A stretch of 64,000 nt of DNA from Macrostomum lignano (lineage: Eukaryota): positions 20,424 through 84,423 of the forward strand of contig NIVC01002391.1 of the NCBI GenBank assembly GCA_002269645.1, written 5' to 3'. Of this stretch, positions 7,701 through 60,124 are shown piece after piece. Within the stretch, counting starts at the first letter, position 1; each line of letters opens with the position of its first letter. The notes beneath the pieces are model-generated. The model was not told the DNA's origin, did no database searches, and saw nothing but the letters and a program-made list of their open reading frames with translations. A program made the position numbers and the translations under genes.

Positions 7701-8718
7701 AAGACCAGCAACCGGGAGATCGCAAAGCGGGACCTCACGCTGGTGGACAGCAGCGGCTGCTCCGTCCGCTGCACCCTGTGGGGTGACGAGGCGGTTAAGT
7801 TCAACGGCGAGAAGAAGCCGGTGGTGGCCGTCAAGGGCGCCAAGGTGTCGGACTTTGGCGGCAGGTCGCTGAGCTCCACCACCAACAGCTGCTTCCTGAT
7901 CAACCCGTCGATGCCCGAGGCAGACAGGCTTCGCGGCTGGTACCACATGGAGGGCCAGCAGATGCAGTTCGACACGTTCAGAGGCGACGGCGGAGCTGGC
8001 GGCGGTCCGGGCGGCGGAAGCGCCGTCTATCGCAACCTGAAGGACTGCAAGGCCGGCGGCTTCGGCACCGGGGACAAGTTCGAGTACTTCAGCTGCCTTG
8101 CCTGCATCATTCACATGAAGCGGGAGACGTGCCTGTACCAGGTGAGTGATAGGCTCTAATTGATTGCCTCTTGGTGCTCTGGCAGCCCCCCGCTGAGCCC
8201 CCGGCAACCGCCGCCTTGCAGGCCTGCCCGAAGCCCGACTGCAACAAGAAGGTGATCGAATTCAATGGCGAATACCGCTGCGAGAAATGCCAGTCCAGCT
8301 ACCCGAATTTCACCTGGCGATTCCTGCTGCAGGCGAATCTGGCTGATCACACCGACAACCAGTGGGTGACCTGCTTCCAGGTGAGCTGCTGTCGCCAGTT
8401 CTGTGAGCACTGAGTAGTTTATCTGAGTCAGCATTTCTTATCGCTGCCTCTGCTCATCATCAACAGGACACGGCCGAGAAGCTCCTGGGAGTGACCGCTC
8501 AGCAGCTCGGCCAGATGCGCTCGGACGGAGACGACAAGGGCCAGACAGGCGTGTTTGAGAAGGCCCTGTTCCAGCATCACCTGTTCACCATGCGGGCCAA
8601 GATGGAGAACTTCCAGGACGAGATGCGGCTGCGTGTTGTTGTGCAGGACGTGAAGCAGATGAACTTTGCTGAGGCCGGCCGCCTGTTGGTGAGCCAGATC
8701 GAGGCCATGGCCGTGTGA
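4757..8718 (+). CDS. RPA1: Replication protein A 70 kDa subunit, paralog a (5 exons, ~640 aa)
   Basis: Exons 4757-5443, 5813-6138, 7643-8141, 8222-8380, 8467-8718 all have GT-AG junctions and splice in frame (1923 nt). The product has RPA70N, DBD-A ([27 protein letters not shown]), DBD-B ([14 protein letters not shown]) and DBD-C with a C4 zinc ribbon ([10 protein letters not shown]...RCEKC). Confidence 0.97.
5497..5775. repeat. 42-bp minisatellite in RPA1a intron 1
   Basis: About 6 copies of cttacatcagtagtgtcattgacattgcagcatatcagccta. Confidence 0.95.
6256..7590. repeat. Variable ~25-30-bp minisatellite in RPA1a intron 2
   Basis: Repeated core ctgttgcagtgtttgg(g/tg)gcactcc(gt/at)gt; it produces spurious ORFs in all frames. 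Confidence 0.97.
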
Positions 8719-12614: not shown

Positions 12615-15600
12615 TCACACGGCCATGGCCTCGATCTGGCTCACCAACAGGCGGCCGGCCTCAGCAAAGTTCATCTGCTTCACGTCCTGCACAACAACAC
12701 GCAGCCGCATCTCGTCCTGGAAGTTCTCCATCTTGGCCCGCATGGTGAACAGGTGATGCTGGAACAGGGCCTTCTCAAACACGCCTGTCTGGCCCTTGTC
12801 GTCTCCGTCCGAGCGCATCTGGCCGAGCTGCTGAGCGGTCACTCCCAGGAGCTTCTCGGCCGTGTCCTGTTGATGATGAGCAGAGGCAGCGATAAAAAAT
12901 GCTGACTCAGATAAACTACTCAGTGCTCACAGAACTGGCGACAGCAGCTCACCTGGAAGCAGGTCACCCACTGGTTGTCGGTGTGATCAGCCAGATTCGC
13001 CTGCAGCAGGAATCGCCAGGTGAAATTCGGGTAGCTGGACTGGCATTTTTCGCAGCGGTATTCGCCATTGAATTCGATCACCTTCTTGTTGCAGTCGGGC
13101 TTCGGGCAGGCCTGCAAGGCGGCGGTTGCCGGGGGCTCAGCAGGGGGCTGCCAGAGCACCAAGAGGCAATCAATTAGAGCCTATCACTCACCTGGTACAG
13201 GCACGTCTCCCGCTTCATGTGGATGATGCAGGCGAGGCAGCTGAAGTACTCGAACTTGTCCCCGGTGCCGAAGCCGCCGGCCTTGCAGTCCTTCAGGTTG
13301 CGATAGACGGCGCTTCCGCCGCCCGGACCGCCGCCAGCTCCGCCGTCGCCTCTGAACGTGTCGAACTGCATCTGCTGGCCCTCCATGTGGTACCAGTCGC
13401 GAAGCCTGTCTGCCTCGGGCATCGACGGGTTGATCAGGAAGCAGCTGTTGGTGGTGGAGCTCAGCGACCTGCCGCCAAAGTCCGACACCTTGGCGCCCTT
13501 GACGGCCACCACCGGCTTCTTCTCGCCGTTGAACTTCACCGCCTCGTCGCCCCACAGGGTGCAGCGGACGGAGCAGCCGCTGCTGTCCACCAGCGTGAGG
13601 TCCCGCTTCGCGATCTCCCGGTTGCTGGTCTTGCCCACGATGGTCTGCACGTCGTGCGTCTCGTGCACCACGCCGCAGACGTCCACGAACCTGCGGAAGG
13701 GTTGTGCGTGTGTGGGCATCCTCATGGGCTCTGCCTGGTTGCGTCACTGCAGCACTGCAACAGACACTGCAACAGACACGGAGTGCTCCAAATACTGCAA
13801 CAGACACTGAGTGCCCCAAGCACTGCAACAGACACGGAGTGCCCAAACACTGCAACAGACACTGAGTGCCCAAACACTGCAACAGACACTGAGTGCCCAA
13901 ACACTGCAACAGACACGGAGTGCCCAAACACTGCAACAGACACGGAGTGCCCAAACACTGCAACAGACACGGAGTGCCCCCAACACTGCAACAGACACGG
14001 AGTGCCCAAACACTGCAACAGACACGGAGTGCCCCCAACACTGCAACAGACACTGAGTGCTCCAAACACTGCAACAGACACTGAGTGCCCAAACACTGCA
14101 ACAGACACGGAGTGCCACCAAACACTGCAACAGACAAGGAGTGCCCCAAACACTGCAACAGACACGGAGTGCTCCAAATACTGCAACAGACACGGAGTGC
14201 CCAAACACTGCAACAGACAAGGAGTGCCCAAACACTGCAACAGACACGGAGTGCCCCCAACACTGCAACAGACACGGAGTGCCCAAACACTGCAACAGAC
14301 ACGGAGTGCCCCCAACACTGCAACAGACACGGAGTGCCCAAACACTGCAACAGACACGGAGTGCCCCAAAAACTGCAACAAAGGAGTGCCCAAACACTGC
14401 AACAGACACGGAGTGCCCCCAACACTGCAACAGACACGGAGTGCCCAAACACTGCAACAGACACGGAGTGCCCAAACACTGCAACAGACACGGAGTGCCC
14501 CAAACACTGCAACAGACACGGAGTGCCCCAAACACTGCAACAGACACGGAATGCCCAAACACTGCAACAGACACGGAGTGCCACCAAACACTGCAACAGA
14601 CACTGAGTGCCACCAAACACTGCAACATACACGGAGTGCCCCAAAAACTGCAACAAAGGAGTGCCCAAACACTGCAACAGACACGGAGTGCCCCAAAAAC
14701 TGCAACAAAGGAGTGCCCAAACACTGCAACAGACACTGAGTGCCACCAAACACTGCAACAGACACGGAGTGCCTCAAAAACTGCAACAAAGGAGTGTCCA
14801 AACACTGCAACAGACACTGAGTGCCACCAAACACTGCAACAGACACGGAGTGCCCCGAAAACTGCAACAAAGGAGTGCCCAAACACTGCAACAGACACTG
14901 AGTGCCACCAAACACTGCAACAAAGGAGTGCCTAAACACTGCAACAAAGGAGTGCCCAAAAACTGCAACAGACAAGGAGTGCCCAAACACTGCAACAGAC
15001 CCTTCGTTTGGGAGCCCCCCAAACGGAGTCCCACAAGCTCACAGAGCTTATATATGCACGGCAACACCAAGAACTTGCCAAAGACAAAGCGCCACTCAGC
15101 TACCACAACTACCCACTTGTTCGGCTCCACCGTGTCCAGCTGAGCGATCGGCACGAAGTTGAACTTCATCTCGGGCACCGCGGCAGCGTCGGCATCGTCG
15201 CACTGCTGCAGCTGCGACTCGCTGCTCAGCACCATCTCGTATTCGTTCTGCGTGTTGTTGAACTGCTTGTTCGCCGCCTTCAACTGGCCCCTGCTGATGT
15301 ACATGGCGCGGCCCAGCTCCACCAAGTCGAAGTACTTGTCCACCTCGTCTCTGAAGGCAGTCACGCGGATCTCGCTGCTGTCGTCGGTCAGGACGAAGCT
15401 GAACAGCTTGCCCTCGCCTCGGCTGTTTGACCAGGTGCGAACCTGCGGATATTTCAGATGGGCTTGTGACTGGCTACTGATTTAAGTAGGCTGATATGCT
15501 GCAATGTCAATGACACTACTGATGTAAGTAGGCTGATTTGCTGCAATGTCAATGACACTACTGATGTAAGTAGGCTGATATGCTGCAATGTCAATGACAC

Positions 15601-18450
15601 TACTGATGTAAGTAGGCTGATATGCTGCTATGTCAATGACACTACTGATGAAAGTAGGCTGATATGCTGCTATGTCAATGACACTACTGATGTAAGTAGG
15701 CTGATATGCTGCAATGTCAATGACACTACTGATGAAAGTAGGCTGATATGCTGCTATGTCAATGACACTACTGATGTAAGTAGGCTGATATGCTGCAATG
15801 TCAATGACACTACTGATGTAAGTAGGCTGATATGCTGCAATGTCAATGACACTACTGATGTAAGTAGGCTGATATGCTGCAATGTCAATGACACTACTGA
15901 TGAAAGTAGGCTGATATGCTGCTATGTCAATGACACTACTGATGTAAGTAGGCTGATATGCTGCTATGTCAATGACACTACTGATGAAAGTAGGCTGATA
16001 TGCTGCTATGTCAATGACACTACTGATGTAAGTAGGCTGATATGCTGCAATGTCAATGACACTACTGATGTAAGTAGGCTGATATGCTGCAATGTCAATG
16101 ACACTACTGATGAAAGTAGGCTGATATGCTGCTATGTCAATGACACTACTGATGTAAGTAGGCTGATATGCTGCAATGTCAATGACACTACTGATGTAAG
16201 TAGGCTGATATGCTGCAATGTCAATGACACTACTGATGTAAGTAGGCTGATATGCTGCAATGTCAATGACACTACTGATGTAAGCAGCACTATCAGATAG
16301 GAACTGAATGACACTACTGATGTAAGCAGCACTATCAGATAGGAACTGAATGAAACTACTGATGTAAGTAGCACTATCAGTTAGGAACTGAATGACACTA
16401 CTGATGTAAGTAGCACTATCAGATAGGAACTGAATGACACTACTGATGTAAGCAGCACTATCAGATAGGAACTGAATGACACTACTGATGTAAGCAGCAC
16501 TATCAGATAGGAACTGAATGACACTACTGATGTAAGTAGCACTATCAGTTAGGAACTGAATGACACTACTGATGTAAGTAGCACTATCAGATAGGAACTG
16601 AATGACACTACTAATGTAAGCAGCACTATCAGATAGGAACTGAATGACACTACTGATGTAAGCAGCACTATCAGTTAGGAACTGAATGACACTACTGATG
16701 TAAGTAGCACTATCAGATAGGAACTGAATGACACTACTGATGTAAGCAGCACTATCAGTTAGGAACTGAATGACACTACTGATGTAAGTAGCACTATCAG
16801 ATAGGAACTGAATGACACTACTGATGTAAGCAGCACTATCAGTTAGGAACTGAATGACACTACTGATGTAAGCAGCACTATCAGTTAGGAACTGAATGAC
16901 ACTACTGATGTAAGCAGCACTATCAGATAGGAACTGAATGACACTACTGATGTAAGCAGCACTATCAGATAGGAACTGAATGACACTACTGATGTAAGTA
17001 GCACTATCAGTTAGGAACTGAATGACACTGTTGTTGTTAAACGGGGGTGGGAGGAGAAGCGCTGCCCGCGGATCAGCCCTAAGGGGGCTCTGCCGCATGG
17101 ATCTTGCTGTGGGCCATACTACCAGGGGCTTTAAGCCCGAGAGGCCACTATTGGAACCAGAGCTCAGGACTCTGGGGAGAGCATGGAGCATTGGAGCTAC
17201 TAACCCAAGCCTATGGACTAGACACCGGCAACCCAAAAGTGGAATCAGGGACGGTGCTAGGACCGAGTCCACCCAGGCCACCACCCAGCAGACAAGTCCC
17301 GGGAGTGCGCGAAAAAAGAATTGGAATGAAAAAATGTTTGGGTTACTACTGAAAGCGGTCCTAGAGCAGGGAATATCCTGAAGTCTACGGAAATGGCTTG
17401 ATAATTGGAGTGAGTCTAGAAGGCTTGTTTCCGAGGGCTGAATGACACTACTGATGTAAGCAGCAGTATCAGTTAGGAACTGAATAACACTACTGATGTA
17501 AGCAGCAGTATCAGTTAGGAACTGAATAACACTACTGATGTAAGCAGCAGTATCAGTTAGGAACTGAATGACACTACTGATGTAAGCAGCAGTATCAGTT
17601 AGGAACTGAATAACACTACTGATGTAAGCAGCACTATCAGTTAGGAACTGAATAACACTACTGATGTAAGTAGCACTATCAGTTAGGAACTGAATAACAC
17701 TACTGATGTAAGCAGCACTATCAGTTAGGAACTGAATAACACTACTGATGTAAGTAGCACTATCAGTTAGGAACTGAATGGTGCTGATTGATCAGACGGA
17801 TCCAATGAACCATGCAATCAGCCTACCTGACTCTTCTGGGTCACCCGGCCGCAGACGGTCCACTTGTTCTGATACGGGTTCAGCGAGGAGATCGGACGAA
17901 CCCGACTGGTGTCAATGCCGCTGCCAGCCGACTGGTCGCTGCTGCCTCCACCGAAGGACCTTCCAGAGTGCGGCGGCGTCTGCGATATGAAGTTAGCGCC
18001 ACTGCTGAAGCCACTGTGTGTCGGGCGCGGCGGAGTCTCCTGGAGGGTGGTGAACCCGGGCGGTCGGTTGCTGTCGGCGAGAGGCTTCTGCGTTGAGGCC
18101 TCTGGCTCTATCAGAGACTGGTTAGGCTCGGACCCCATGCCCAGGATTTCAAGCGATATGCCAATCAGGATCTGCTTGTCCGCCTTGGTCTTATTAATAA
18201 CGTACTTAGTCAGCCTCAGAACTGTGCCAGGCAATAACTCGCCATTTTCAATCAGGTAGTTGAGCTGGGTGCCCAGCAACATGTAAGAGTGCTGCTCAAC
18301 TCCGTCAGTTACAAACAGACGGTAGCGGTCCTGTCCGCCGCCAGGAACCTTGCGGTGGCCGAGCACCTTCAGCACTGGGTTCTGGTAGTCCTCGCCATTA
18401 CTGAGAGCCCGCACGGAGCCGCGGCTGAGCATGCTGTCTAGGTCAGACAT
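12615..18450 (-). CDS. RPA1: Replication protein A 70 kDa subunit, paralog b (5 exons, ~619 aa)
   Basis: Minus-strand exons 18450-17827, 15442-15117, 13690-13192, 13111-12953, 12866-12615 have GT-AG junctions and splice in frame (1860 nt). Intron positions match paralog a. Confidence 0.97.
13750..15000. repeat. Minisatellite in RPA1b intron 2 (same family as 6256-7590, inverted)
   Basis: Repeated aacactgcaacagacacggagtgccc units. Confidence 0.97.
15482..17778. repeat. Compound 42-bp minisatellite in RPA1b intron 1 (two related unit types)
   Basis: 15482-~16280 has unit aagtaggctgatatgctgcaatgtcaatgacactactgatgt; ~16280-17778 has unit aagcagcactatcagataggaactgaatgacactactgatgt. Both share aatgacactactgatgtaag. 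The array is interrupted at 17030-17437. Confidence 0.96.
17030..17437 (-). mobile_element. Short retroposed insertion (5'-truncated LINE or SINE) in the intronic array
   Basis: Flanked by the 12-bp direct repeat ctgaatgacact (17018-17029 and 17438-17449). The minus strand ends in a tttaacaacaac tail. There is weak similarity to ~19470-19540. Confidence 0.75.
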
Positions 18451-32523: not shown

Positions 32524-35500
32524 CTACTCTCGTTCAACCGCTGAGCCGGCCGGAGCCATGGCCTTGACCTCCTGGGCGTCCTGCATCAGGGCGCAGAGCG
32601 GACAGCACAGGTGCGCCAGCAGGTCGCTGACGAAGCGGCCGGGGATGCCCTGCTTCTCGCGGATCTTGCCGCGCACAATGGCGCCGAGGCAGGGCGACAC
32701 GAACAGGTAGCCGATGCCGCAGAGCAGGCAGCTCTCCTGCACAGCCTCCGCATTCTTGCCGAAGGTGTAGCAGGGAACCAGATAGGTGACGATGCACAGG
32801 CCTGCGACAGGGGAGGGTCAATAATTTGATTTGTTATAATAGCTGCATTCATTTTGACTTGGGCATCTTCCATAGTGGTTATAGAGCGTCGGACTCACGA
32901 CTGAAAAGTCGGAGGTTCGATTCTTGATCCACTTAGCTCTTCATTGCTTCAGTTCACCCAGTTGTAAACTTGGTAGCGGCATTAGCTGGGCTAATGTAAT
33001 TAGTTAGAAATCGTTTCGTTGATATTACATGTACAAGTTTTGTACTGTAAGACAATACATTCCAATATGTTCCAATAAGACAATATGTTCCATCGTATAG
33101 CGTTCGCTGCTTGAGCCAAGTCATTAAGTAAAAACGGGACATTTTATTTTCTTCCGATTAAAACCTGCGATTTTTTTGTGTTTGAAAAATATACCGTCTA
33201 CTTATTTCGCTTTTGAAATTTTTTAGCGTAAAGCGAACCTTAAATGTTTTTCCGAGAAATACCATTTTATTTAATTAGATACTTAAAAAGATTTATGAAG
33301 TCGTTTTAGAGCTTTTTTATTTAAAACGTTAAACAGCAGCTTCTCCTGACGTATTTGTCAGTTCACTGCTTTTCAACCATTTTCAACCAGCCATTTAAAC
33401 AAAGTACAAGACTCGGATCTGAAGTGTTATTTGGTTTAGATTGATTTCTTCATTTTTTTTTAATTTTGAAAAAATCCCTTCCCTAGCTGGCTTTTTGCTT
33501 CAAAAGTCCAACAATTTTTCATTGTAAATGTTGTGTAGCCAAGGCTTAAAGTTTTCCAGTTGAGTTGAAAAGTAAAGTGCTAGGTGCGCACAGTTGCTTT
33601 ATTTATATTTTTTTATTGAAGAAAAACTACATAATCGATATTTTAACTACACTAGAAAAACTGCACGATCGATAAATTCAAGAGCTAGCGATATCACGTG
33701 ATTAATAATACATTATACGGATAATTTATCAACTACTCTACTTAAAGTGGTAGTATAAGTAATAGACAATAATAATAATATAGGTAGCATTTACGTTATA
33801 GTAGAAATATTCGTAAAATATTCTCTATCATTAAGTTGGTCTGTCAGGTTACACGACACAACAGTCAATATAGACCATCCATATCGCTGCAATTGCCAAA
33901 CCAACTAACAAACAGCTTGTTGATAACGTAGCTCATATTTAAAATTAACCGGAAGCCGGAAATGAAGTATATTAGTCGGATCGCAGGTGCATAATTTATA
34001 CCTTTTTGCGACCTAGTTTGCCAAAAAATTCAATCAATTTTGCCCAAGAAGAATGCTCATATATTCATAAGTTCAGGAGTGCATGTGTACGCACAGAGAC
34101 ATTTAGCCACTGAAATGAAGAAAGAGGTCAGTTGGTTGTCATGCAGTCAAAGATGTCTACCAATTGGTAGACATACCACTACCAGCTCTAGACACGTTTG
34201 AATATTGGTTCACCCACGGAATGCACTTCTGCTGGGTGATGACATGCATTCATCAAGGCCTCTACCTCTCGTTTGAGCACTGGCATGCGATGCTGTTCCA
34301 TCGTATAGCGTTCGCTGCTTGAGCCAAGCTTCAGTTGGATTGGACTTCACGTTGAATGGCTGTATCCTTCGTAAAAACCCACCACCACCACCCAGTTGTA
34401 AGGTCCACACTGGGCCATTTTTGCTCTTTTCATGTCTATTGTCTCTGGTGCTTAGTTTTTCTATGGGCAAACTATAGGTCGCAGTTTTGGCAAAATTCAA
34501 TGTAGTTTTCGGACATATTATAGTCTATATGGCTCAAGCTGGGGTCGTAATGGACATCGGATATGGTCCTTGGGTACGAGTTTCCGCGGGCCGAATGATC
34601 GGTATAGCATGCTCTCCAGAAGTCGGAATTTCCTCGTATTGCGTTCTTGAGAGCATGCTAAATGCACTTGCGATACGGCAAATATACGAGCGTAAGTTCC
34701 TTACTGGCAATCAGGGGCGTCGCCACCGGGGGGGGGGGACAGGAGGGACATGCCAATGCTTTGTCCCCCCACTCCACTTTTGTTGACCTGTGATGGAATC
34801 AATAACTTTGCTTCAGGGCGACAAAAAAGGTGCCTGCGGCGCTTGACTTACTTGACTTAGCTGCAGGGCTGTCCCGGAGGGGACACAGCGGGAAGGCGCG
34901 GGCGCCCATTCCGCTAGTCCCTGAACGGCCGACGCGTCGCTATGGACGGAGGGTTGGCGCCGCCCAGGGAGGTCCCCCAGTGTCGCCAGCAGCTATGGTG
35001 CTCTCTGGAAAGGAGAGTTCAGCCCTGCGGGTGGCCCGAAGGTAGCGCATGAGCTGATTAAAGTTTTCGGGTTTGCACGCTTCAGTAATAGATGTGTGTG
35101 GCCCGAGGTAAGTGAGTCTGGCCCGCGTGAAGGCGGGACAGATGCTGACGAAATGCTCAGCGGTTTCGTCACCTGAGTTGCAGAAACTGCAGGTGGCGTT
35201 GGTGGCGTTGCCCTGCAGGTACTGGTGCCTGGAGAAGCAGCCGTGACCAGAGAGGGTCATGGTGGCAGCCCGGATGTCTCTGCGCGAGAGGCGCAAGAGG
35301 AGCTTCCGGAGCTGGTGAGAGGGCTGAGGGACAGCGCCTCTGGATTGCCTGCAGTTCGTGCGGTTCGCCCAAGTCGAGCGGTGCTGAGTCCTGATCCACG
35401 CTTTGATGCGCGAGTCGATGACACAGCCAGGAATCGGGACAAGAGGTTCGGGGCCGAGAGAGGAGCCGGAGGCACCAACTTTTGCAAGGGTGTCAGCCAA

Positions 35501-38500
35501 CTCATTTCCTCGGATCCCCACATGCCCCGGAACCCACTTAAGGGTAATTTTGTTGGCGGAACCCAACACATTGAGGAGTTTGATACAGTCAAGGACTGTA
35601 GCAGAGTTGGTGCTGCAGCCACTGATGGCGTGCAAGGCAGCTTGGCTGTCCGAATGGAAAATGATGTTCTTACCAGTAACGCCAGTGGCGAGAAGCTCTG
35701 CAGTGCAGGAGCTGATGGCCAGAACTTCATTTTGGAAAACACTGGAGTTGACCCCAGTGTATTGAGCGTGGGTAGCGATGACCCTCCCGTTCAGAAAGAT
35801 TCCAACACCAAAGCCGGTGTTGGCTGACTGCTTAGAACTCACCTAAGCAATGAAGCTCACCAGGGTTCCAATGGTCATTGATGTTACCGCGCGAGTCGAT
35901 AGCTACGGAGTAGCGCTGTCTCAGGTTGAGCGTTGAGGCAATGCCATCGGTGAAGACGCGATTGGCCTGACACTCGTTGAGAAAGTTGAGGCACAGATCG
36001 CTATGCGGGACAAGGTTCCGCTTAGCAGGTGCTCTCATGTAAATGAATTTGACGCCGGCATCAATTAGACGCCGCGTCGTTCTAGCCGCCTCACCCCTGA
36101 TGAAGAGGTCAAGAGGGAAGATTAAGAAAGGCCCCCATGCCAGCAAAGGGCGTGGACCTGGTGGCGTTGCAGATGAGCCTACACGCTCTGCCTTGGATCG
36201 TGTTGAGCAGGTCTGCATGGCTTTTGACCTGGGTAGCGCTAACCCAGACAACAGAGGCGTACGTAATGGCAGGTCTAACTACGGAAGTATAGATCCACCA
36301 AAGCCGCTTTGGGGATAGACCCCAAGAAGTGCCAAGTGCTCGTCGGAGCTGGGCCAGGATGGCTGAGGCACGCTTAGCTTTTGCTTTCACGTGGAAGGAC
36401 CAGTTGAGCCGGTGGTCAAGTGTGACCCCGAGACATCTGGTCTGGTGCGCGAAGGCAATATCTCTGCCGTAGAGCTGCAGAGGACGTATGTTCCAGCGTA
36501 GTCTGCTGGTAAACATAATGGCAACGGTTTTGGGCTCAGAGAGTTCCAAACCATTGTCATTGGCCCAGGATTCTGCTTTGCGGATAAAGCTCTGCATCAG
36601 ATCCCTGAGCGTGCTGGGAGACGGTCCTGCCACAATGGCCGTGACGTCATCAGCATACCCGACTTTGAAGACGGGGTCAGGTCGGGAGTCACTCAGAAGA
36701 GCGTCCATGACCAGGTTCCAGAGCGTCGGGGTGAGGACTCCGCCTTGGGGTCCACCCTTACAGACTCTGGTGGAGGCAGTTTGCCCAAGAAGTTGGGCAG
36801 TGACCGTACGGTTGGAGATCATGTACATGATCCACCGTATGAGGGTAGCATGAGCTTTGCGATTTTGAAGGGCCCTCTGAAACGCTTCAAAGATAACGTT
36901 GTCGAAGGCGCCAACAATGTCAAGAAAGAGAGCCAGGGCGTAACCGTCACCCAGTACCGCCCGTTCAATCTTTTCGACAATCGCATGCAGGGCGCTGTCA
37001 GTCGACCTCCCGGTACGGAAGGCGTGCTGATTATTGCTGAGGGGCATCGCTGTCAGCTCGCAGGAGAGCAGCCGCCAGAGAATAAGCCTCTCAGTGAGCT
37101 TAAGCATTGCTGACGTTAAGCTAATTGGCCGGAAGGCCTTGACGCTTTGGTAGTCACCCTTCCCAGGTTTGGGAATAAAGACTACTCGAGCTTCAGTCCA
37201 GCTTTTGGGAACGTATCCCAGCTGGATAGAGGCCCGCATAAGATTGCGGGTGAGTCTCAGGAACGAGGGTATCTTGGCTGCTTCACGAAGGAGAACAGGG
37301 TAGATACCATCAGGTCCAGGAGATTTGAAGGGTTTGAAGGTTCTGACCGCACGAGCGATTAGGTCTTCAGTGACAATGCCCGCCGCTAGGGTGGCTCCAT
37401 CCATCGAATGGTTGGGCTCCGGTCTAGCAGTAGGTACCCTCGGGAAGAATGTGCTAAGCATATGCTGAAGCACTTCTTCAGGGTCTTTAGTAAGAGAGCC
37501 ATCATCTTTTTTGATCATGGCTAATTTGGACATTTTGTCCATTGTAAGGGCCTTGACAAGCCTAGAAGTAGGTCTGTCTTGATCCAATTCATTGCAGAAT
37601 TGGCGCCACTTACATTCCTTGGCCTTGCGCACTTCAGATTTGAAATTGCGGGAGGCTTGCCGGAAAAGCTCCATGTCCTCCGGGTTTCCGGTCTTCATGG
37701 CACGGCGATGAAGGCTTTTGGCCTTCCGCCTGAGTTTCCCCAGCTCCGGGTTCCACCACGGCGCCGAGGTCTTGCCTCTGTAGGCGCGAGCAGGACAAGC
37801 CGCTTCGTAGGCTGCAATAATGCAACCTGTCAGCGTCTCAGCCATATGATCCACATCCTCGCAGGTCTCAATCGGACGTAAGTCCGTGAGTTCCTGCAGG
37901 TGCAGATCAAGGGTAGCCTTGTAGGCCGCCCAATCAGTGTTGCGGATATTGCGTCTCCAAGTGATCGGAGACTGGGTTTTAGTGTCCGCGATATTAAAGG
38001 CGATAAAGCAGTGGTCAGACAGGGAGGGCTCCTCAGACCAGACTCTCCACTCCTTGACTCTGTCAAAGAGTCTTGGGGTAACGAGTGTGGCGTCGAGGAC
38101 CTCGGTCCATCTGCCATTATTAAAGGTAGGAGTGCTGCCGCGGTTGCAGAGCATGAGGTTTGTGTTAGAGATGAGGGCCAGAAGCTCCTCTCCTCTAGTG
38201 TTGGTATCTTTGCTGCCCCAGTGCTTGTGGTGCGCGTTGAGGTCGCCCCCTAAGCACAGCTCAGCGTTCTGGGACTCGCAGTACTGCGCAAGGCGCAGTA
38301 AACTCTCGGGAGCAGGGTCTCTGTCGCCTGGGATATAAACCGAGGCAACAAGACACGTACGCGGAGAGAAATGATTAGATTGGATGACGCAAAGGTCTCC
38401 ATCAGAGAATCAGTCCTCAGCCAAGCCTGGAGATGGCTAGCAGCGAGGATAGCCGCTCTAGGGCGGCTGTTCCCCGGGCCACACACATAAAAATCAGAGT

Positions 38501-41160
38501 AGCCAGAGGGAATGTTGGGCAACTTACCGTTGCGCATCCAGGGTTCCTGGATCAGGATGAGGCCTGGCCTGTACAGCTCAGCAATCTTCATCAGATTTAC
38601 TGACGCAGATACGCAATGCTGTAAATTTATTTGCAGACAGAATGTCGCTCCTTTGGCAGCGTGGAGCTTAGTCATACTGTATTAAATGCAATATCTGGCT
38701 AGAGCCCAGGGCCATCAAGGAGACTTGGACAACAGATCGTCCTCGTCCCAGGCCGCTGGGGCTTGACTGGGAGATGGGAGTTGGTCGACGTCCATGGCCT
38801 CCTCACCCCCACCGGCCCCCCAGCAGAGTCCTCAGGCTCCGATGACAGGATGGAGGAAGCTTCCTCACCTGCATCTTTACCTTCAGACCCCACCAAGGTG
38901 GCCGAGGAGAGCTCGGATTCCGAAGACCCGGCCTCGTCCTCAACTCCTTCTCCGACTGGCAGGTTTGGTTCCCGGGGCTTGGCCGGAGCCGTTACCGCGG
39001 TCGCCGAACTGCTGCTAGCAGAGGGGCGAGATGCAGCTTTGGCTTTGGGATCGGCTTGCGCCTTTCCTTGGGCCTTAGACTGCGCCCCGCTCTTGCCGGA
39101 GATGCCGGGGTTGGCAGTAGCCTTCCCTTTGGCCGACTTTCCTCGGCGCAACTTGAGCTTGAGGGCACCCAGCTGGAAAGAGGATCCATTAGGGTACCGA
39201 CTCGCCCAAGTGCTGGAAAGGCCGAGGACAATTGAGTTGCCCGTCTCCCCCCTGCGGACTTTACGGTGATACACCAGTCCACTAGCAGGGAGGTCGGGGT
39301 TCAGACGCAGTAGGACCCGGCGAATAACGTCTGGTCCAGCTGCGGTGCTCTTAGCAGGGACGAAAACCACATAGGGTATCGTCTTTGGACGCTGGCCCTC
39401 GCGAAGAAAAAGAGCTCCGCCAAGGTCAGCATCCAAGGAGACCGTCGGTAGCCGCTGGAGCAGCCGCCGAGCGTCCTCCTCGCTGCTAGGAGCAATAAGA
39501 ACGAATGTGCTTCGCAGCACCATCCGCTCAACGCCGATGGAGATTCCCTCCTCGACAGTCAGCTCAATCAGATAGGAGTCAACAGCACTCCACACTTTTT
39601 GAAGCTGATCAGTGGTCCAGTCCTGGTCGCGACCTTGGATGATCACTCCCGGGATTTTGGCCTTGGCCTTCGCCGCAAAGGTAGCTCCCGAAGGAACCTC
39701 CTTGTTGGCAGTGGCCATTTGTTGCGCCGTGGTTTCGGCCTCAGCAGCCGCGGCAGCAGCTCCAGGGAGCGCCGCCGCTGAACTACTGGAGCTTCCACCG
39801 GCCGGCCCGCCTGGTTGCCTTGGGACTCCAGTCGCTTCAGCATCCATGGTGGACGCCGCCGCTTTGGCCCCCGCAGCTCCCTTCTTGGCCTGCCTTTTGG
39901 CGCGTTGTTTAGCGCGTTTGCGCTCAAGCCGAGCCCGCTGAGCTTCATCGGATCTGCCAGATTTGGCCGGTCCTTTAGGCTCAGAGCTCGCGGTTCCCTT
40001 AGATCCACCAGCGGAGCTGGCAGGTCTTAGGGTATTTTGAGTTTGGTAGCTCTGGTCGGATCTGCCAGCAGAGCCAGCCGGTCCTTCCTTTGCCACAGTT
40101 GAATCAGTCGGTTGGGATCTGCCAGCAGGGCCGGCCGGTCCTTCGGACTGAGGTTGGGGTTTAGAAGGGTCCCCGTCCCTAGAAATAGCTTGTTTATCCA
40201 TAGTCGGCTCGAAGGCCATGATAAAAGGTTGGTGGGCTACCCTCAAAGGGGCGCGGTACCCACCCGGCCGCTCCACCTGACCGGGCAGTAGGCCAATAGC
40301 ACCCTCAAGGCTGGCCCGACACCAGGAGGGGGACCGCTTGCGACCGGACTACTCCCCGGCCTTCCAGCCCATCGGCACGGTCAACACCTTAGGCATTAGA
40401 GAGTACGTTGAGCAGTACCACGGCCTGCAGGTTGGCGAGCCAGACCCGCATACCCAAATTCGGCCGAAGCCACTGGATAGGGTCGCCAGCGCCGGAGCCC
40501 AGTCTGTCCAGCAGCCCTAGGGACTGCCTTGAACACACGCGGGGACGAGTACCCTGGGTCGACTTGCGAGACAGCGTGGGGGGGGGGGTCTGCGGCTGCC
40601 AGAGGCAAATAGAGGGTGCAGACCTCCCACCAGCCTTGACCTGCTGAAGATAGGGGCAGGCGTGAAGCATCGCAGACCTTAGCCCATGGGCCTAGTCTGT
40701 CTCATACTTCACTGGCATGCTGAATACGCCTTCGCGTGCTGCCTGCGGCGCTAAAATGAGTGCCTGCGGCGCTAAAATGAGTGCCTGCGGCGCGAAAATG
40801 GTGCATGCGGCGCTAAAATGAGGGCCTACTACAGCGCTAAAATGAGTGCCTGCGGCGCTAAAATGAGTGCCTGCGGCGCTAAAATGAGTGCCTGTGGCGC
40901 TAAATTAATCGCTGACAAATACGATTCTGAAAATAATGTACATGTAGTCATGTACATGTAGAAGTCTTGTCCCCCCACCATAAAATCCATGGTGGCGCCC
41001 CTGCTATGGCAATACACGCATCGAGCAAGATGTACGAAATCTCCCAATACTGCTGGGTTGCTTCAGCAAGATGACACTCTGAAACGTTTAAAAAGAACAT
41101 GCCAGCCTTACCGAAATCGTCAAAGCAGCCGCACAATCCATGCTTGAACTGGTTGGACAT
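32524..41160 (-). CDS. PLAC8: PLAC8/cornifelin-family cysteine-rich protein (2 coding exons, ~108 aa)
   Basis: Exon 41160-41112 (MSNQFKHGLCGCFDDF, donor gtaagg) joins exon 32801-32524 (GLCIVTYLVPCYTFGKNAE...LLAHLCCPLCALMQDAQE) in frame across an 8.3-kb intron. The symbol denotes the family, not proven orthology. Confidence 0.88.
32862..32990 (+). mobile_element. tRNA-derived SINE (not a functional tRNA)
   Basis: A-box-like tagtggttatagagcg and B-box ggttcgattc (32914-32923) are followed by a SINE-body-like tgcttcagttcacccagttgtaaa. The acceptor and anticodon stems do not pair properly. Confidence 0.65.
34844..40739 (-). mobile_element. Full-length LOA-clade-like non-LTR retrotransposon (ORF1; ORF2 APE-RT-RNase H)
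   Basis: 13-bp TSD tgcctgcggcgct (34831-34843, 40740-40752) and a taagtcaagtaagtca 3' tail. ORF1 starts at ATG 40219 and runs to ~38700 (DUF4780-like, no Zn knuckle). ORF2 runs 38675 to ~34940 with APE (QINLQHC, LIQEPW, GGDLNAHH), RT (LDIVGAFDNV, PQGGVLTPTLW, YADDV) and RNase H (VFQNEVLAI, SDSQAAL, WVPGHVGIRGNELAD). There are at least 3 small indels (~38410, ~36115, ~35840). Confidence 0.93.
40495..40739 (-). ncRNA. HDV-like self-cleaving ribozyme (predicted) at the 5' end of the LOA element
   Basis: Minus strand: P1 GCACGCG (40739-40733) pairs with CGCGUGU (40541-40535) including the G1-U wobble. P3 GGG/CCC flanks L3 UACUCGU. P1.1 is AC/GU. P2 is CCCA/UGGG (plus GA/UC after a bulge). P4 is GGCAGUCC-CUA-GGGCUGCU. 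J4/2 is CAGAC. J1/2 is a ~170-nt structured insert. G1 is the TSD-defined first base of the element. Confidence 0.78.
40741..40905. repeat. 21-bp tandem repeat (target of the LOA insertion)
   Basis: Several copies of gagtgcctgcggcgctaaaat. Confidence 0.9.
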
Positions 41161-41999: not shown

Positions 42000-42174
42000 T
42001 CTAACTGACTGACCGACTAAAACTGTCTAGCTAACTAACTAATTACCTAACTAACTAACAATTCAACTAACTAATTACCTAACTAACTAACAATTCAACT
42101 AACTAATTACCTAACTAACTAACAATTCAACTAACTAATTACCTAACTAACTAACAATTCAACTAACTAACTAT

Positions 42175-42238
<64 letters not shown>

Positions 42239-42287
42239 CTAACTGACTAAATGACTAACTATCTAGCTAACTAACTAACTAAGTACC

Positions 42288-42358
<71 letters not shown>

Positions 42359-42480
42359 CTAACTAACTAACTAACTAAGTAACTAACTAAGTAACTAACT
42401 AACTATCTAACTAACTAACTGACTAACTGACTAAACTATCTAATTAACTAGCTAACCAACTATCTAACTTCCTACCTAAC
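42000..42480. repeat. (CTAA)n/(GTAA)n compound microsatellite
   Basis: Long runs of ctaa and gtaa, preceded by a few longer composite units. Confidence 0.95.
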
Positions 42481-43313
42481 TAAATGGGTAAACTCGATCA
42501 GCCATTAAAGCAATGTAGCTCTTAGCTGAACGCCGCATTGCCAAAAATGTATTGCATAATTTTGTTATATAGTTATCATTACTATACTAAAAGTAGTATG
42601 TTGACAACTTCCAAATAAAGCAGCACTGTTTGGAGTGCATTGATTGCATGAATTGAGAAGAACAAACTAACTAAACAAAACAGATAGTTTTAAACAATAA
42701 CTGCTGAAAAACATAACAAGAAAAATGCCAGCAGACAGCGGCAGGAGATCAAAGGGCAACAGGTCTTATATTGTTTCAACTTGTAATATTCTTGGTGCTT
42801 GAAGTTTTTCCATAAATGCTAAAAGAAGTTCAGATTACTTGACATTTTTCGTCATACGTAGGAAAAAGAAAATACTAACGCTGACAGCAAAAGTAAATAA
42901 AAAAATAAAAAAGTTATTTATTAAAAAAGTTTGCACTAGTGTAGCGGAATAGCAAGGGAATAAGAGTAATAATAACTACTTTTTTTAAATACCCTTTCAA
43001 TATCTTCAACGTTTCAGAAATTTTTGATAATATTTTCTGTGACAATTCACCGACATTCTGTATGACACATTCCCCTGTCATGTCTACAAACAAGTGTTTA
43101 CCAATTTTATAACAACTTTGACTATTCCCCAACTAGTGAAATACCTCCTAAGCAATTTCTGCAAAAAAGTATTGTTTTCTGAATTACGTCTCTAGACCTT
43201 GGAGAACTCCTTTAATGACTACTTGACTTCGTATAATTGACTACTAAACACACATAAATGAACGATAAACTTTAAAGAAAGTCGGAATAATTCCACCCAG
43301 TCAGCCCGGTCAA

Positions 43314-49357: not shown

Positions 49358-50014
49358 TCACTTATTCTCGGCATTGTCGTGCGTGTGCCAGGTCAGACGC
49401 TCCTCGTAGAACCGAATGACCACCTGGGGACACTTGATATTGGCTTGGCGGGCCGGCACCAGGTCGGCCTCGTCATGATCCACCCACTTCATGAGGAACA
49501 TCAGCTCGCCGCTCGAGTCCGTGGCGCCAACAATTCTGTCAGCCTGCAGGCCGCGCTCGAATCCGCGCAGTTTAGTAGCGCCGCTCCCCGCTGGCCCGTC
49601 GGACTCGGCCAGCTTCGCCTCCTTGGACTTTTTGGCGGCCTTCTCGCCTGTCGGCTTCCTGGTGCCGCTGCCAGAGGCCGAGTCGGCGTCACCGCCGCCG
49701 CTGGCCCCGACGCGGCGCTTCTTCTCCGACGGGCCGTGCTTTTTCCTCTCGGCCCGGGTGGACTCGAATTCCGCTACAATTTCCGGACAGTCGCAGTTCT
49801 CCTCCGGCTCCCAGGTGTTGTCTGAATGCGGATAGTTCTTCCACTTGATGAGGTACTCCTTCTTGCCGTTGCGAATCCGGCTGTCCATGATCTTCTCCAC
49901 CTGGTATTCGTCGGCGTCCTCTTCCTCTTCAATTTCGGGTTGGACGTTGACAGCGGCAGCTGGCGGCTCCTCATCGGCGTCGCGGGCCTCGTCGGATTTG
50001 CGTTTTTCAGGCAT
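49358..50014 (-). CDS. HP1: Heterochromatin protein 1 (chromobox; chromo + chromo shadow domains), 218 aa
   Basis: Chromodomain [37 protein letters not shown], a basic hinge, and chromo shadow domain [28 protein letters not shown]...[18 protein letters not shown] at 50014 is preceded by an acceptor-like tctagccag at 50022. AATAAA lies on the minus strand near 49261. Confidence 0.96.
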
Positions 50015-51094
50015 TTCAGAGCTGGCTAGAGAAACGAGAGGAACTGAAATTGAATTCATTAAAGGACTACCTAAATGCTCTGCTAAGAAAAAAGCTGCAA
50101 CGACTCAAAATTGAAAGGTAAAAGCTCGTGAAATTGGCAAACAAGTCTAAGCAGCAGAGGCAGCAACTAAATTAGTTTCTTTCGACATCATTTCAGCCAT
50201 CTGCAGCTATGGAACAGCTAGATTCAAGTGATCTGGCTGTTAATCAACCTGAAACTAGTGCTAAAATCAGCACAATTAGAACGTCCATCTCTTTAGGCAG
50301 AAAGAGACTTAGGCCATCTGGCATGGCTGATATACTATCCAAAGGTGCCATTTAATTGGCCAATCAAATGTATCAACAGAAGAGCTTTGTGGTGCTCAGG
50401 TCAGGTGAGATCATTTAAAATGAATAAGCTAATTGATTGATAGAAAAAAGAACCATTCCAACTAACTAGGCCTATCAAAAATACAATCTTACAAATGACC
50501 TAACTGTGACCAAATTATTAAGGCTAAATGCCTCATCATCTAATTATGTCTGTATTTTTTAGATTGGCCCTAGGCATTTCTGCAACTTAGGCCTACTTTG
50601 TCCTTGGCTAGGCCTGGCCCCTTGCTAGCCAACTAGATTGGCTAGTTTAGCCAGGTATTGTACATGTATGTTCTATGGTATATAGCCTAGTCCTATCATA
50701 GGCCTATTGGTTTCCATGCTTTTTGGTGCCTAGTTTCTGGTATCCCAAATTAGGTGCCTTAGTTTATGATGCCTAATTATTAAAATAATTTTATAATATA
50801 ATAATTGTTCTACAAACTGTATTTTTTTCTTAATAAAAGCTTGTCCTTTTTGTTAAACTGGTACATACATGCCCAACACCCATCCAACCTGTCCAAACTG
50901 GATGGGTGAAATGGCCACTGGCCAAGGTAAGTTGCAAAATCAAAAATGCAAAAAACAAAAAATTGGGGGAAGATAAAAAAAGAAGAGGAAGAGAAAGGGA
51001 AAAGAAAAGAGGGAGAAGAGAGAGAGGGGAAAGAGAGAGAAGAAAAGAGAAAAAGGCAAGAAAAGTCGTATACAAAGTGAAAATTAAATTGCAA

Positions 51095-58688: not shown

Positions 58689-60124
58689 CTAAATATGCTT
58701 TTTAACAAATTGGAATTTCGTGTAGAAATGCAGCGGAATCTCTTGCGTCTTCGCCAGCCCCGGCACCCGGTAGTCTGCCAGGGTGTTGTTCCAGAACCGC
58801 TCGACCATGCACTGCAGTGCCAGCCGCTGGAAGTTGTAGTAAAACTTGTTGACAAAGAACTCCGGCCTCTTATTCATAGCCGGCAGGTCTTTGATGCCCC
58901 AGATGCAGATCTGGCGCACAGCTTTGCCGGAGAGGCAGGGATAGCCGAACACGCCGAACAGCCAGTTCTTGTAGCGATTAAGAAACGGCTGCTTTACGTT
59001 GTCCGTCTTTAGGCCGGTTAGGTCTGCGCCAGGCACTTTGAGCACGTCCGGGTTGTGATTCAGCGAGGCAAATAAGGTCTCATCCGGGCACGGCCAGCCG
59101 CCGTGTTTTCTCAGGTGCTCAATGATCTGCCGCCCAACGCTCGAGAATACGTACTCTACGAATCCTCTGGTGGCGGTGATGTGCACCGAGCCTTTGTACC
59201 ACTGGATCTCTTTCTTACTGCCGTCGGGCAGTTGAACCGAAAGCTGCGGCGTTCCTCTGTGCGTGCCGGCGTTCTCCAGGTTGTTTGCTCCGTTTAACGA
59301 TTTGAGAATTCTAACGAGTTCGCGCATAGTGCGCAGCGGGTACTCCTGGCCTACCAGGTTGATGAAGTAACGCCATTTTTTGCTCATCTCCAGCAGCCGC
59401 TTCATGCAGTGCAGGTCGGCCTCTAGCACTGTGAACGTTCCCCAGTTCACGTTGCTCCGGCTCTCGGAGACAATAACGTTTGGAAAGCAGCTAGCGTATT
59501 TTGTGACCGCTTGAAAGAATGCGTTGCTTGACTTATTATCGACGTGGAAACAATAAAAGTGCTCCGGCCTGTACACCGCTCTGAAAAGCTTCTCAACTTG
59601 GTAGAAGTCTTTGAAAACAACGAGTGAAAATGCTAGCGGAAAGTCCGCTTCTTCTTGGCTCATGGTTTCAGTCACGTAGGTTTGACGGATTTCGGTACAG
59701 CTATCGGCCGCCATGCGTTCATCCAGGCGATAGTCACTGGGCACGTCGCAGTGCTCCATCAGCTGCTGGGCCTTCTTTTGCTCTGCCGGGTCTCCAGCAA
59801 GCAGACGATCGCAGGCCACCTCCGCCTGTCTGTGCGTTCGGCCCAGCCTGGCCTGAAGGCGCAGGGCTCGACCAGCCGATTGGCTCTCCAGGATTTGATG
59901 GCCGTCGCCTATGCCTATCCATTCGTCAGTGTTGCTGCTTCCGCTGCCACTGCCCTACCGTTGCTGCCGCCGACCACGCCGTCATCTAGGTTGAGCTTTC
60001 GAGTTGCTGGCGGCGCAAAGGTCCCTGATGGGCGCATCGAAGTAGTCATCAGGTAGCCTATTAATGCACCAGCATTGAACAGCAACAGGCCTAGGAGTAT
60101 CGTCTTCACTTGGACTTGTAGCAT
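58689..60124 (-). CDS. GCNT: Core-2/I-branching beta-1,6-N-acetylglucosaminyltransferase (GT14), single coding exon with one frameshift at ~59955
   Basis: ATG 60124 starts a type II membrane anchor (LLGLLLFNAGALIGYLM). Restoring one base at ~59955 joins it to the catalytic ORF with FPLAFSLVVFKD, VYRPEHFYCFHVDNKS, WRYFINLVGQEYPL, CPDE, CIWGIKDL and FVNKF. The symbol denotes the family. Confidence 0.9.

Follow-up and report, generated by a model that had tools for sequence, protein, structure and literature searches.

A probable HDV-like self-cleaving ribozyme at the exact 5′ end of a LINE in Macrostomum lignano

The minus strand of the Macrostomum lignano DNA analysed here (64,000 nucleotides of contig NIVC01002391.1, hereafter the window) carries a LINE of ~5.9 kb, and its 5′ end raises the question of whether the element encodes the ribozyme that would free its RNA from a longer transcript. 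An earlier note on this DNA had proposed a nested double pseudoknot of the hepatitis delta virus (HDV) type, with the putative cleavage site at the first base of the LINE, and every sequence test that we ran agrees with that proposal. Judging from these tests, the first 242 nucleotides of the element probably encode an HDV-like self-cleaving ribozyme. The case is persuasive, in our view, but an unremarkable addition to the examples of a mechanism known from other LINEs.

Element boundaries and coding parts

The placement of the first base, G1, at a boundary defined by a target-site duplication (TSD) was borne out. Identical copies of the 12-mer GCGCCGCAGGCA adjoin both ends of the element (Table 1), and outside the neighboring minisatellite the only other occurrence of this 12-mer in the window is the one at the 3′ end of the LINE. 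The 5′ flank consists of a 21-nt minisatellite, whose unit, GCGCCGCAGGCACTCATTTTA, includes the duplicated target. A reading of these 21-nt repeats as 5′ monomers of the element was ruled out, as they lie upstream of the cleavage site and contain the TSD; the 3′ flank carries on as a degenerate 21-nt repeat unit, which also speaks against it.

Both ORF1 and an ORF2 region for endonuclease (APE), reverse transcriptase (RT), and RNase H lie downstream of the candidate ribozyme. No Pfam domain that would point to a clade was found in ORF1 (DUF4780 occurs in relatives only), pieces of which are 98–99% identical to the Macrostomum lignano models P0121 and P0123. ORF2 gives Pfam matches to Exo_endo_phos_2, RVT_1, and RNase_H and is broken by frameshifts in this copy, so that there is no current requirement for the ribozyme to function here. 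Pieces 98–100% identical to the element are found elsewhere in M. lignano; the family is young, so the fold belonged to an active element until recently. The best matches in an RT search were unnamed or chimeric M. lignano gene models; as the chimeric models join the element to unrelated host genes, they suggest that its copies are dispersed. The combination of APE, RT, and a C-terminal RNase H in ORF2 is a trait of the LOA clade that several clades fit equally well. The same layout is common to the I, Tad1, and ingi groups and does not single out the LOA clade, to which the earlier note had assigned the element.

Table 1 Coordinates of the LINE, its flanks, and the parts of the candidate ribozyme. 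Positions are those of the window; ribozyme nucleotides are counted along the minus strand from G40739 (nt 1)
Feature	Ribozyme nt	Window position	Strand	Remarks
Minisatellite, 21-nt unit GCGCCGCAGGCACTCATTTTA		40740–40904	minus	5′ flank, outside the element
5′ TSD, GCGCCGCAGGCA		40740–40751	minus	Identical 12-mer also flanks the 3′ end
LINE element		40739 to 34843	minus	5,897 nt, bounded by a 12-bp TSD
P1 5′ strand, GCACGCG	1–7	40733–40739	minus	First 7 nt of the element
J1/2	8–181	40559–40732	minus	174-nt insert with several predicted hairpins
P2 5′ strand, CCCA	182–185	40555–40558	minus	Four Watson–Crick pairs with UGGG
P3 5′ strand, GGG	186–188	40552–40554	minus	Pairs with CCC at 40544–40542
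L3, UACUCGU	189–195	40545–40551	minus	Fits the U.C.CG. consensus
P3 3′ strand, CCC	196–198	40542–40544	minus	Directly precedes P1′
P1 3′ strand, CGCGUGU	199–205	40535–40541	minus	Seven pairs with GCACGCG, G1-U205 wobble
P1.1 3′ strand, GU	206–207	40533–40534	minus	G206-C191 (C40549) and U207-A190 (A40550)
P4 hairpin	208–233	40507–40532	minus	2 + 8 bp and a CUA loop in the constrained fold
J4/2, CAGAC	234–238	40502–40506	minus	Candidate catalytic C234 (C40506)
P2 3′ strand, UGGG	239–242	40498–40501	minus	3′ end of the candidate ribozyme
ORF1		38699–40276	minus	Open frame of 525 codons
ORF2 region		34940–38675	minus	APE, RT, and RNase H, split over three reading frames
3′ tail		34843–34860	minus	Two copies of TAAGTCAAG, the second without its last G; the element ends at 34843
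3′ TSD, GCGCCGCAGGCA		34831–34842	minus	Directly after the 3′ tail

The predicted fold and its rarity by chance

All the helices listed by the earlier note are present on the minus strand, at the positions it gave and in the order that defines HDV-like ribozymes, and the two stems that it had drawn within J1/2 both appear in the predicted fold. P1 has the ~7 bp typical of the class, closed by a G1-U wobble at the nucleotide that would follow the cleavage site, and its 3′ strand is the sole complement of the 5′ strand within 300 nt. The 3-bp P3 and an L3 within the usual 7–8 nt stand immediately 5′ of P1′. L3 reads UACUCGU, compared with UCCuCGu in the Rfam drz-agam-1 consensus. P1.1, a helix of 1–2 bp in this class, joins positions 2 and 3 of L3 to the two nucleotides after P1′, here with a non-GC composition that falls inside the range on record (PMC13635239). 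The P2 pseudoknot, which ties the segment next to P3 to the 3′ end, is present at its minimal length. The P4 hairpin is followed by a J4/2 that starts with the putative catalytic C40506 and has the C-N-R-A pattern of the Rfam consensus and of L159 (CuaA), a second LINE-associated ribozyme described below. Cleavage is predicted between A40740 and G40739. The A at position −1 is unable to extend P1 against G206, so P1.1 would not be blocked, following the rationale of PMC3185411.

The HDV fold is also competitive in energy: constrained folding gave −94.1 kcal/mol before P2 was counted (P2 adds about −4 kcal/mol), against −99.4 kcal/mol for the unconstrained nested optimum, in which the 3′ part pairs differently from the HDV scheme. 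The J1/2 insert, which includes a run of 11 C at 40588–40578, folds on its own at −67.5 kcal/mol (z = −1.85), with a predicted closing helix of 3 + 4 bp that possibly brings P1 and P2 together.

As the earlier note had proposed, the window was searched with an HDV descriptor. It was built from the general HDV consensus: a 3-bp P3, an L3 of the form U.C.CG., a 2-bp P1.1, a 7-bp P1 starting from G, a P2 no shorter than 4 bp, a stem for P4, and a C within J4/2. Over the two strands of the window together it matches one site only, the 5′ end of the LINE. Among 1000 shuffled windows, with dinucleotide content kept in 2-kb blocks, 10 had any match, an expectation of 0.01 per window that leaves aside the extra condition that P1 start at an element boundary. 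P1 in fact starts at the first base after the 12-bp TSD, a coincidence to the exact base that random 5′ truncation or a chance P1 would produce about once in hundreds to thousands of cases. From the sequence, the joint chance of a descriptor match and this coincidence is estimated at ~1e-4 or less. A descriptor limited to structure, with a free L3, gave ~11 matches in the window and was dropped as unspecific.

The same descriptor approach recovered a compact HDV-like ribozyme at the exact 5′ end of another LINE (L159, positions 6079–6152), whose RT is 24% identical to that of the window element. It scores 26–32 bits with RF00094 (HDV_ribozyme), RF01787 (drz-agam-1), and RF02682 (HDV-F-prausnitzii), with E-values of 7e-5 to 1e-4 and a start exactly at base 6079.

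The other search proposed earlier, with the HDV covariance models of Rfam 15, returned no match at the gathering score or at E ≤ 1 in the whole window, and none even at E ≤ 10 in positions 40400–40800. We judge this null result uninformative, because the gathering score also misses the textbook ribozyme of L159, whose scores are all sub-threshold, and because the candidate carries a 174-nt insert inside P1. The missing match is probably due to this insert together with the short P2. As the L159 control does score with these models, the candidate is placed in the structural class only and in none of the Rfam sequence families.

Relatives and known HDV-like ribozymes

No second copy of the element was found in the window. 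Protein queries with ORF1, the RT, and the 5′ UTR translated in three frames recovered only M. lignano UniRef/metaclust models, with no contigs on record, and an exact look-up of the ORFs gave no match in contig collections that do not include the host genome. One other family member, P0124, reaches the ribozyme; its overlap is confined to the 3′ half of P4, J4/2, and P2′, over which it is identical to the window at the protein level. In metagenome DNA, a 19-base pattern of the core plus P2 had no match. The 15-base core had more than 120, and 6 of the 120 listed pass the full descriptor, no more often than cores that occur by chance in viral contigs, of which 2 of 31 pass; over viral and metagenome contigs, 5–6% of such chance cores pass for P1, P2, and P4 with a J1/2 of up to 500 nt. 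Two of the six metagenome passes were inspected (L091 and L130); both are high in GC, with no sign of a LINE.

Among relatives at 35–50% RT identity (L001–L006, L158, a second element in L159, L160, L161 from Euphydryas, and L162 from Trichogramma), strict and relaxed descriptors found no HDV-like core upstream of ORF1, a result whose meaning is limited by contigs that may stop short of the true 5′ end. Likewise, no HDV core was found at E ≤ 1 with Rfam models upstream of ORF1 in L001, L003, L004, L006, L158, L161, and L162.

The earlier note had overrated the novelty of the candidate, as previous work has described LINEs that begin with HDV-like ribozymes, J1/2 segments of great length, and non-GC P1.1 helices (PMC6765202, PMC3774820, PMC4908430). 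R2, R4/Dong, baggins, RTE, and L1Tc elements carry such ribozymes at their 5′ ends (PMC3774820, PMC6765202, PMC3185411). J1/2 spans 216–498 nt in silkmoth R2 (PMC3774820), and a structured J1/2 activates large HDV-like ribozymes (PMC4908430). The R2, R4, and Dong ribozymes lie in the 5′ UTR, release the element RNA from a co-transcript, and share a highly conserved P3/L3/P1.1 core; R4 and Dong cleave at the first base of the element (PMC3774820).

As in LINEs of the R4/Dong, baggins, RTE, and L1Tc type, G1 of the window element is the first base defined by the TSD, with RT-encoding ORFs downstream. Many R2 elements instead cleave upstream, within 28S sequence. R2, R4, and Dong use a restriction-like endonuclease, whereas the window element is of the APE type with RNase H. 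They also insert site-specifically (28S rDNA, TAA repeats), in contrast to the dispersed copies suggested here, and differ from the window element in P1.1, which here consists of C-G plus A-U. In general layout, baggins (LOA clade) and RTE are comparable: as Ruminski et al. 2011 are summarized in PMC6765202, these are APE-type LINEs with a ribozyme at the 5′ terminus, thought to have no promoter of their own and to be cut out of read-through transcripts.

The drz-Agam-1 type (RF01787, with L159) shares with the window the element order, the G1-U wobble, the 3-bp P3, the 7-nt L3 (UUCACGU in L159), and a J4/2 of C-N-R-A followed by C, and in L159 also the position at the exact 5′ end of a LINE. 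Unlike the window candidate, these ribozymes are compact, with a J1/2 of a few nucleotides, a P1.1 3′ strand of GG, and a longer P2 (9 bp in the Rfam drz-Agam-1 consensus and 5 bp, CCUCA/UGAGG, in L159).

The composition of P1.1 had been taken as a compensated change that argues for selection on the fold. This argument is weak: a compensated change shows only in comparison with an ancestor or another copy, and active ribozymes vary naturally at the second pair, which in some is a mismatch (PMC13635239, PMC3185411; also the Rfam consensus for F. prausnitzii). P1.1 consists of U:A plus C:U in the fast ribozyme of C. briggsae and of U:A plus U:U in the equally fast one of Ackermannviridae phage, and its second pair is non-Watson–Crick in mammalian CPEB3 (PMC13635239). 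L1Tc has a single pair (PMC3185411), and the Rfam consensus for F. prausnitzii reads as U-A plus C-G. Compared with the C. briggsae, phage, CPEB3, and L1Tc ribozymes, the window has Watson–Crick pairs at both positions; among the published sequences that we surveyed, we found no description of the exact C-G plus A-U combination.

Proposed mechanism and alternative readings

Taken with the known cases, the 5′ end of this LINE very probably harbors a genuine HDV-like 5′-processing ribozyme, for which we propose the following pathway. The element would be co-transcribed with upstream DNA, nt 1–7 would pair with nt 199–205 to form P1, and the pair of coaxial stacks that marks the HDV fold would be assembled from P2/P3 and P1.1/P4. 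In ribozymes of this class, cleavage depends on divalent ions, leaves a 5′-OH and a 2′,3′-cyclic phosphate, and is abolished by mutation of the catalytic C. With C234 and a bound divalent metal ion, the 2′-OH of A40740 would then attack the phosphate 5′ of G40739. The released element RNA would start exactly at G1 with a 5′-OH, and target-primed reverse transcription to the end of this RNA would yield new copies that begin at G1 and are flanked by a TSD, as is observed. The fold may in addition aid translation of the uncapped RNA, as in the analogous R2 and L1Tc cases.

A more far-reaching view, to which we give only a small chance, is that the element is the first known member of a lineage of LINE ribozymes peculiar to flatworms, in which the HDV-like core with its C-G/A-U P1.1 was acquired or re-invented independently of R2, RTE, and baggins and the 174-nt, multi-hairpin J1/2 forms a second functional module. 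The independent origin is suggested by the nearest sampled relatives, in which no such core was found. In such a lineage, the J1/2 module may serve as an internal promoter, offer proteins a binding platform, or act as a regulated "pinch" that controls cleavage.

It is unlikely that the fold, though inherited from genuine HDV-like ribozymes, has lost all or most of its catalytic activity in this lineage or copy because P2 is short, P1.1 includes an A-U pair, and J1/2 is long, with the 5′ end set otherwise, for example by an internal promoter that starts at nt 1. The 4-bp P2 and the 5-nt J4/2 do lie at the weak extreme of what is known for this class, one pair of P1.1 is A-U, and ORF2 is frame-shifted in the window copy. 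A long unstructured J1/2 slows HDV-like ribozymes (PMC4908430), and the slow cleavage of CPEB3 has been linked to its weak P1.1 (PMC13635239). However, the core shows no departure from the consensus that is known to abolish activity, the C. briggsae and phage ribozymes are fast despite mismatches in P1.1 (PMC13635239), and the J1/2 of the window is predicted to be highly structured and able to close on itself. The youth of the family also argues against this reading.

Less probable still is that the fold has been maintained chiefly for some other function, such as a translation entry site for ORF1 or a binding platform for an element protein, with cleavage incidental or absent. Additional roles have been proposed for the R2 and L1Tc ribozymes (PMC6765202), and the large J1/2 domain has no assigned role, but in the known cases such roles accompany cleavage and do not replace it, and cleavage accounts for the fact that the element boundary falls exactly at G1, which neither translation nor protein binding would do. 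Finally, an accidental HDV-like pairing in a 5′ UTR that is simply GC-rich and structured is very improbable: the matches to the free-L3 descriptor, the chance cores that pass in viral and metagenome contigs, and the missing Rfam match would suit it, but the expectation drops to 0.01 per window once the L3 consensus is required, and P1 sits on the very first base of a TSD-bounded LINE, a known seat of such ribozymes.

The self-cleaving ribozyme that we favor opens no new question, as its mechanism, its association with LINEs, and both of its "unusual" features are already established. It would help to annotate the exact 5′ termini of Macrostomum LINEs and would add a data point on what the HDV core tolerates. 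If confirmed, it would provide a natural case of a Watson–Crick, AU-containing P1.1 combined with a large structured J1/2, and the users of HDV-like ribozymes at the 5′ end would come to include a free-living flatworm and a LINE family of the APE type with RNase H.

The 5′ end of the LINE and its fold

Reading 40300-40900 on the minus strand, with every element of the candidate indexed by script, we found all the helices that the earlier note had proposed, and its observation proved right in every detail; the elements follow one another exactly as in the HDV nested double pseudoknot. The J1/2 segment forms a 174-nt insert inside P1, and the two stems that had been named within it are seen in predicted folds. 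It also carries a run of 11 C, the length of which likely varies between copies.

The 12-mer GCGCCGCAGGCA lies immediately ahead of G40739 and is repeated directly after the 3′ tail, a short repeat of TAAGTCAAG-type units with its last base at 34843, as the target-site duplication (TSD); elsewhere in the window it occurs only inside the 5′ minisatellite. As the minisatellite unit includes the 12-bp TSD and the 3′ flank (34800-34842) carries on as a degenerate unit, the element was inserted into the 21-nt array. Downstream of the candidate ribozyme, ORF1 (525 codons) lacks the DUF4780 present in relatives, and the ORF2 region, broken over three reading frames, encodes endonuclease (APE), reverse transcriptase (RT), and RNase H domains, an architecture that fits clades besides LOA too.

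Table. Elements of the candidate (nt counted from G40739) and other features (window coordinates unless a locus is named)
Feature	Position	Strand	Detail
P1 GCACGCG	nt 1-7	minus	pairs with CGCGUGU, nt 199-205: 6 Watson-Crick pairs and G1-U205 wobble
P2 CCCA	nt 182-185	minus	pairs with UGGG, nt 239-242
P3 GGG	nt 186-188	minus	pairs with CCC, nt 196-198; closes L3
L3 UACUCGU	nt 189-195	minus	
P1.1	G206 and U207	minus	two bases 3′ of P1′; pair with C191 and A190 of L3
P4	nt 208-233	minus	2+8 bp hairpin
J4/2 CAGAC		minus	first C is window base 40506
C run in J1/2	40578-40588	minus	predicted partner, G-rich stretch GGUGGGAGG
LINE	40739 to 34843	minus	5,897 nt
TSD copies	40751-40740; 34842-34831		
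5′ minisatellite	40740-40904		21-nt unit GCGCCGCAGGCACTCATTTTA, 7.8 copies
ORF2	34940-38675	minus	N-terminus frame one; APE-RT frame two; short piece back in frame one; RNase H frame three
HP1-like protein gene	49358-50059	minus	chromo and chromo-shadow
Core-2/I-branching enzyme gene	58689-59819	minus	
RPA1 N-terminal domain gene	17818-18450	minus	
(CTAA)n microsatellite	42027-42483		~114 units; ~1.3 kb upstream of LINE on minus strand
Inverted pair	~7844-8190; ~13140-13489	plus; minus	~5 kb apart
Conserved 5′ UTR block	L001:80-250; L158:80-260		two hairpins
L159 ribozyme	L159:6079-6152	plus	P1 GCCUGAC/GUCGGGU; L3 UUCACGU; P1.1 3′ strand GG; P4 loop GAAA; J4/2 CUAA

Chance, folding energy, and Rfam models

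Our HDV descriptor, drawn from the general HDV-like consensus, combined a P3 of three Watson-Crick pairs, an L3 of the form U.C.CG., a 2-bp P1.1, a 7-bp P1 starting from G at most 300 nt upstream, a P2 of 4 bp or more, a P4 stem, and a C 3-6 nt ahead of P2′. The candidate was its only match in the window, both strands included. Shuffled windows (dinucleotide content kept, 2-kb blocks) held any match in 10 cases out of 1000, and this rate of 0.01 per window leaves out the coincidence that P1 begins precisely where the TSD-bounded LINE begins. With the L3 consensus dropped, a structure-only descriptor gave ~11 matches per window and was set aside as unspecific; the L3 sequence therefore bears much of the weight. 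This relaxed descriptor caught both copies of one sequence present in inverted orientation, which are probably two arms or copies of another repeat.

The nested part of the HDV fold (P1, P3, P4, and the J1/2 hairpins) has a predicted energy of -94.1 kcal/mol, to which P2 adds about -4 kcal/mol, and the unconstrained nested optimum, with the 3′ part paired differently, reaches -99.4 kcal/mol. In a nested-only predictor the HDV fold thus appears competitive without being uniquely preferred, which is usual for the HDV-like class, whose P1.1 is not predicted by folding (PMC4908430). Folded alone, J1/2 gives -67.5 kcal/mol (z = -1.85), and in its predicted fold a 3+4 bp closing helix is possible that would join P1 and P2 spatially; this is an arrangement with a demonstrated activating effect on large HDV-like ribozymes (PMC4908430).

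No Rfam HDV family matched the candidate at the gathering score or at E ≤ 10. As a positive control, we used a compact HDV-like ribozyme that the descriptor picked in L159 (ENA contig ctg27714_25x_l). It precedes by ~590 nt the ORFs in a short LINE with an RT only 24% identical to that of the window, and it too was missed at the gathering score. Below this threshold, it scored 26-32 bits (drz-agam-1, E = 7e-5; HDV-F-prausnitzii, E = 1e-4; HDV_ribozyme, E = 0.035), the first two alignments beginning at exactly 6079 and the third at 6077. Rfam models therefore see compact HDV-like examples weakly, and the silence on the candidate is best explained by the 174-nt insert inside P1 and the 4-bp P2. 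The candidate is placed in the HDV-like structural class only, in no Rfam sequence family.

More distant relatives and other matches

Among fetched loci of relatives at 35-50% RT identity, neither strict nor relaxed descriptors found an HDV-like core upstream of ORF1, in contigs that may stop short of the true 5′ end; Rfam at E ≤ 1, run for seven of these loci, gave none either. At the clade level, the ribozyme is not a general feature. The closest retrievable relatives, L001 and L158 (~50% RT identity; JGI samples 3300040778 and 3300040779), have a conserved block of 5′ UTR in common, with hairpins that keep their pairing by compensatory changes (e.g., CUGCACG/CGUGUAG versus CUGCAUG/CAUGCAG); HDV topology is absent from this block. 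In L003, L004, and L006, related LINEs with DUF4780 in ORF1, a motif U(A/U)CUCGUGGGA is conserved (L003:794-806, L004:845-857, L006:418-430); it is located within a small stem, in the loop and 3′ arm, and directly precedes the ORF1 AUG in L003 and L006. It has the heptamer UACUCGU in common with the candidate L3, in a different context.

The IMG/VR viral contigs L037 (1031-1200), L025, and L010 have GGGTACTCGTCCC as a common core, after which come CGAAGTC and GT. L037 and L025 have a 7-nt P1 complement 64 nt upstream, and L037 also passed the P2, P4, and C tests; Rfam at E ≤ 10 found nothing at this site. Chance 15-base core matches in viral and metagenome contigs, used as an empirical control for the candidate, pass the remaining tests in 5-6% of cases (J1/2 up to 500 nt). 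The viral core could be a chance match or an unrecognised phage HDV-like ribozyme.

The LINE family and its place among known ribozymes

Pieces of ORF1 are 98-99% identical to the M. lignano UniRef models P0121 and P0123, and pieces of ORF2 match P0004 and P0050 at 88-100% identity, models from other copies that change frame at the same ORF2 places; these frame changes may be common to the family, or may have been bypassed by splicing in the gene prediction. A fifth model, P0124, includes the translation beginning with the 3′ half of P4, with identity across 38 residues. These identities place the window in M. lignano or a very close relative, and the LINE family is therefore young and multi-copy. 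In the models, the element is joined to unrelated host genes (UBC9, a GPCR, annexin, and a PGA_cap domain protein), a pattern that hints at dispersed insertions and not at a single specific target.

For R2, R4/Dong, baggins, RTE, and L1Tc, an HDV-like ribozyme at the 5′ end is established; elements that lack a promoter are believed to be released by it from co-transcripts, and translation may also benefit (PMC3774820, PMC6765202, PMC3185411). In the window, host genes for an HP1-like protein, a core-2/I-branching enzyme, and an RPA1 N-terminal domain lie on the LINE strand, and minus-strand genes upstream could provide the co-transcript by read-through. A J1/2 of 216-498 nt is known from silkmoth R2 (PMC3774820). 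P1.1 is known to vary: it consists of U:A and C:U in C. briggsae and of U:A and U:U in a phage, both fast, has a non-Watson-Crick second pair in CPEB3 (PMC13635239), and is reduced to one pair in L1Tc (PMC3185411); in F. prausnitzii we read U-A and C-G from the Rfam consensus. The C-G/A-U P1.1 of the candidate is thus one more detail in a range already known, and from the single copy read, the change that the earlier note had taken as compensated cannot be called a compensatory event.

Finally, we infer catalysis, co-transcription, and any role in translation for this sequence, which is very probably a genuine HDV-like 5′-processing ribozyme belonging to a young LINE family in Macrostomum. As 5′-terminal HDV-like ribozymes in LINEs and variable P1.1 are already known, it adds another case.
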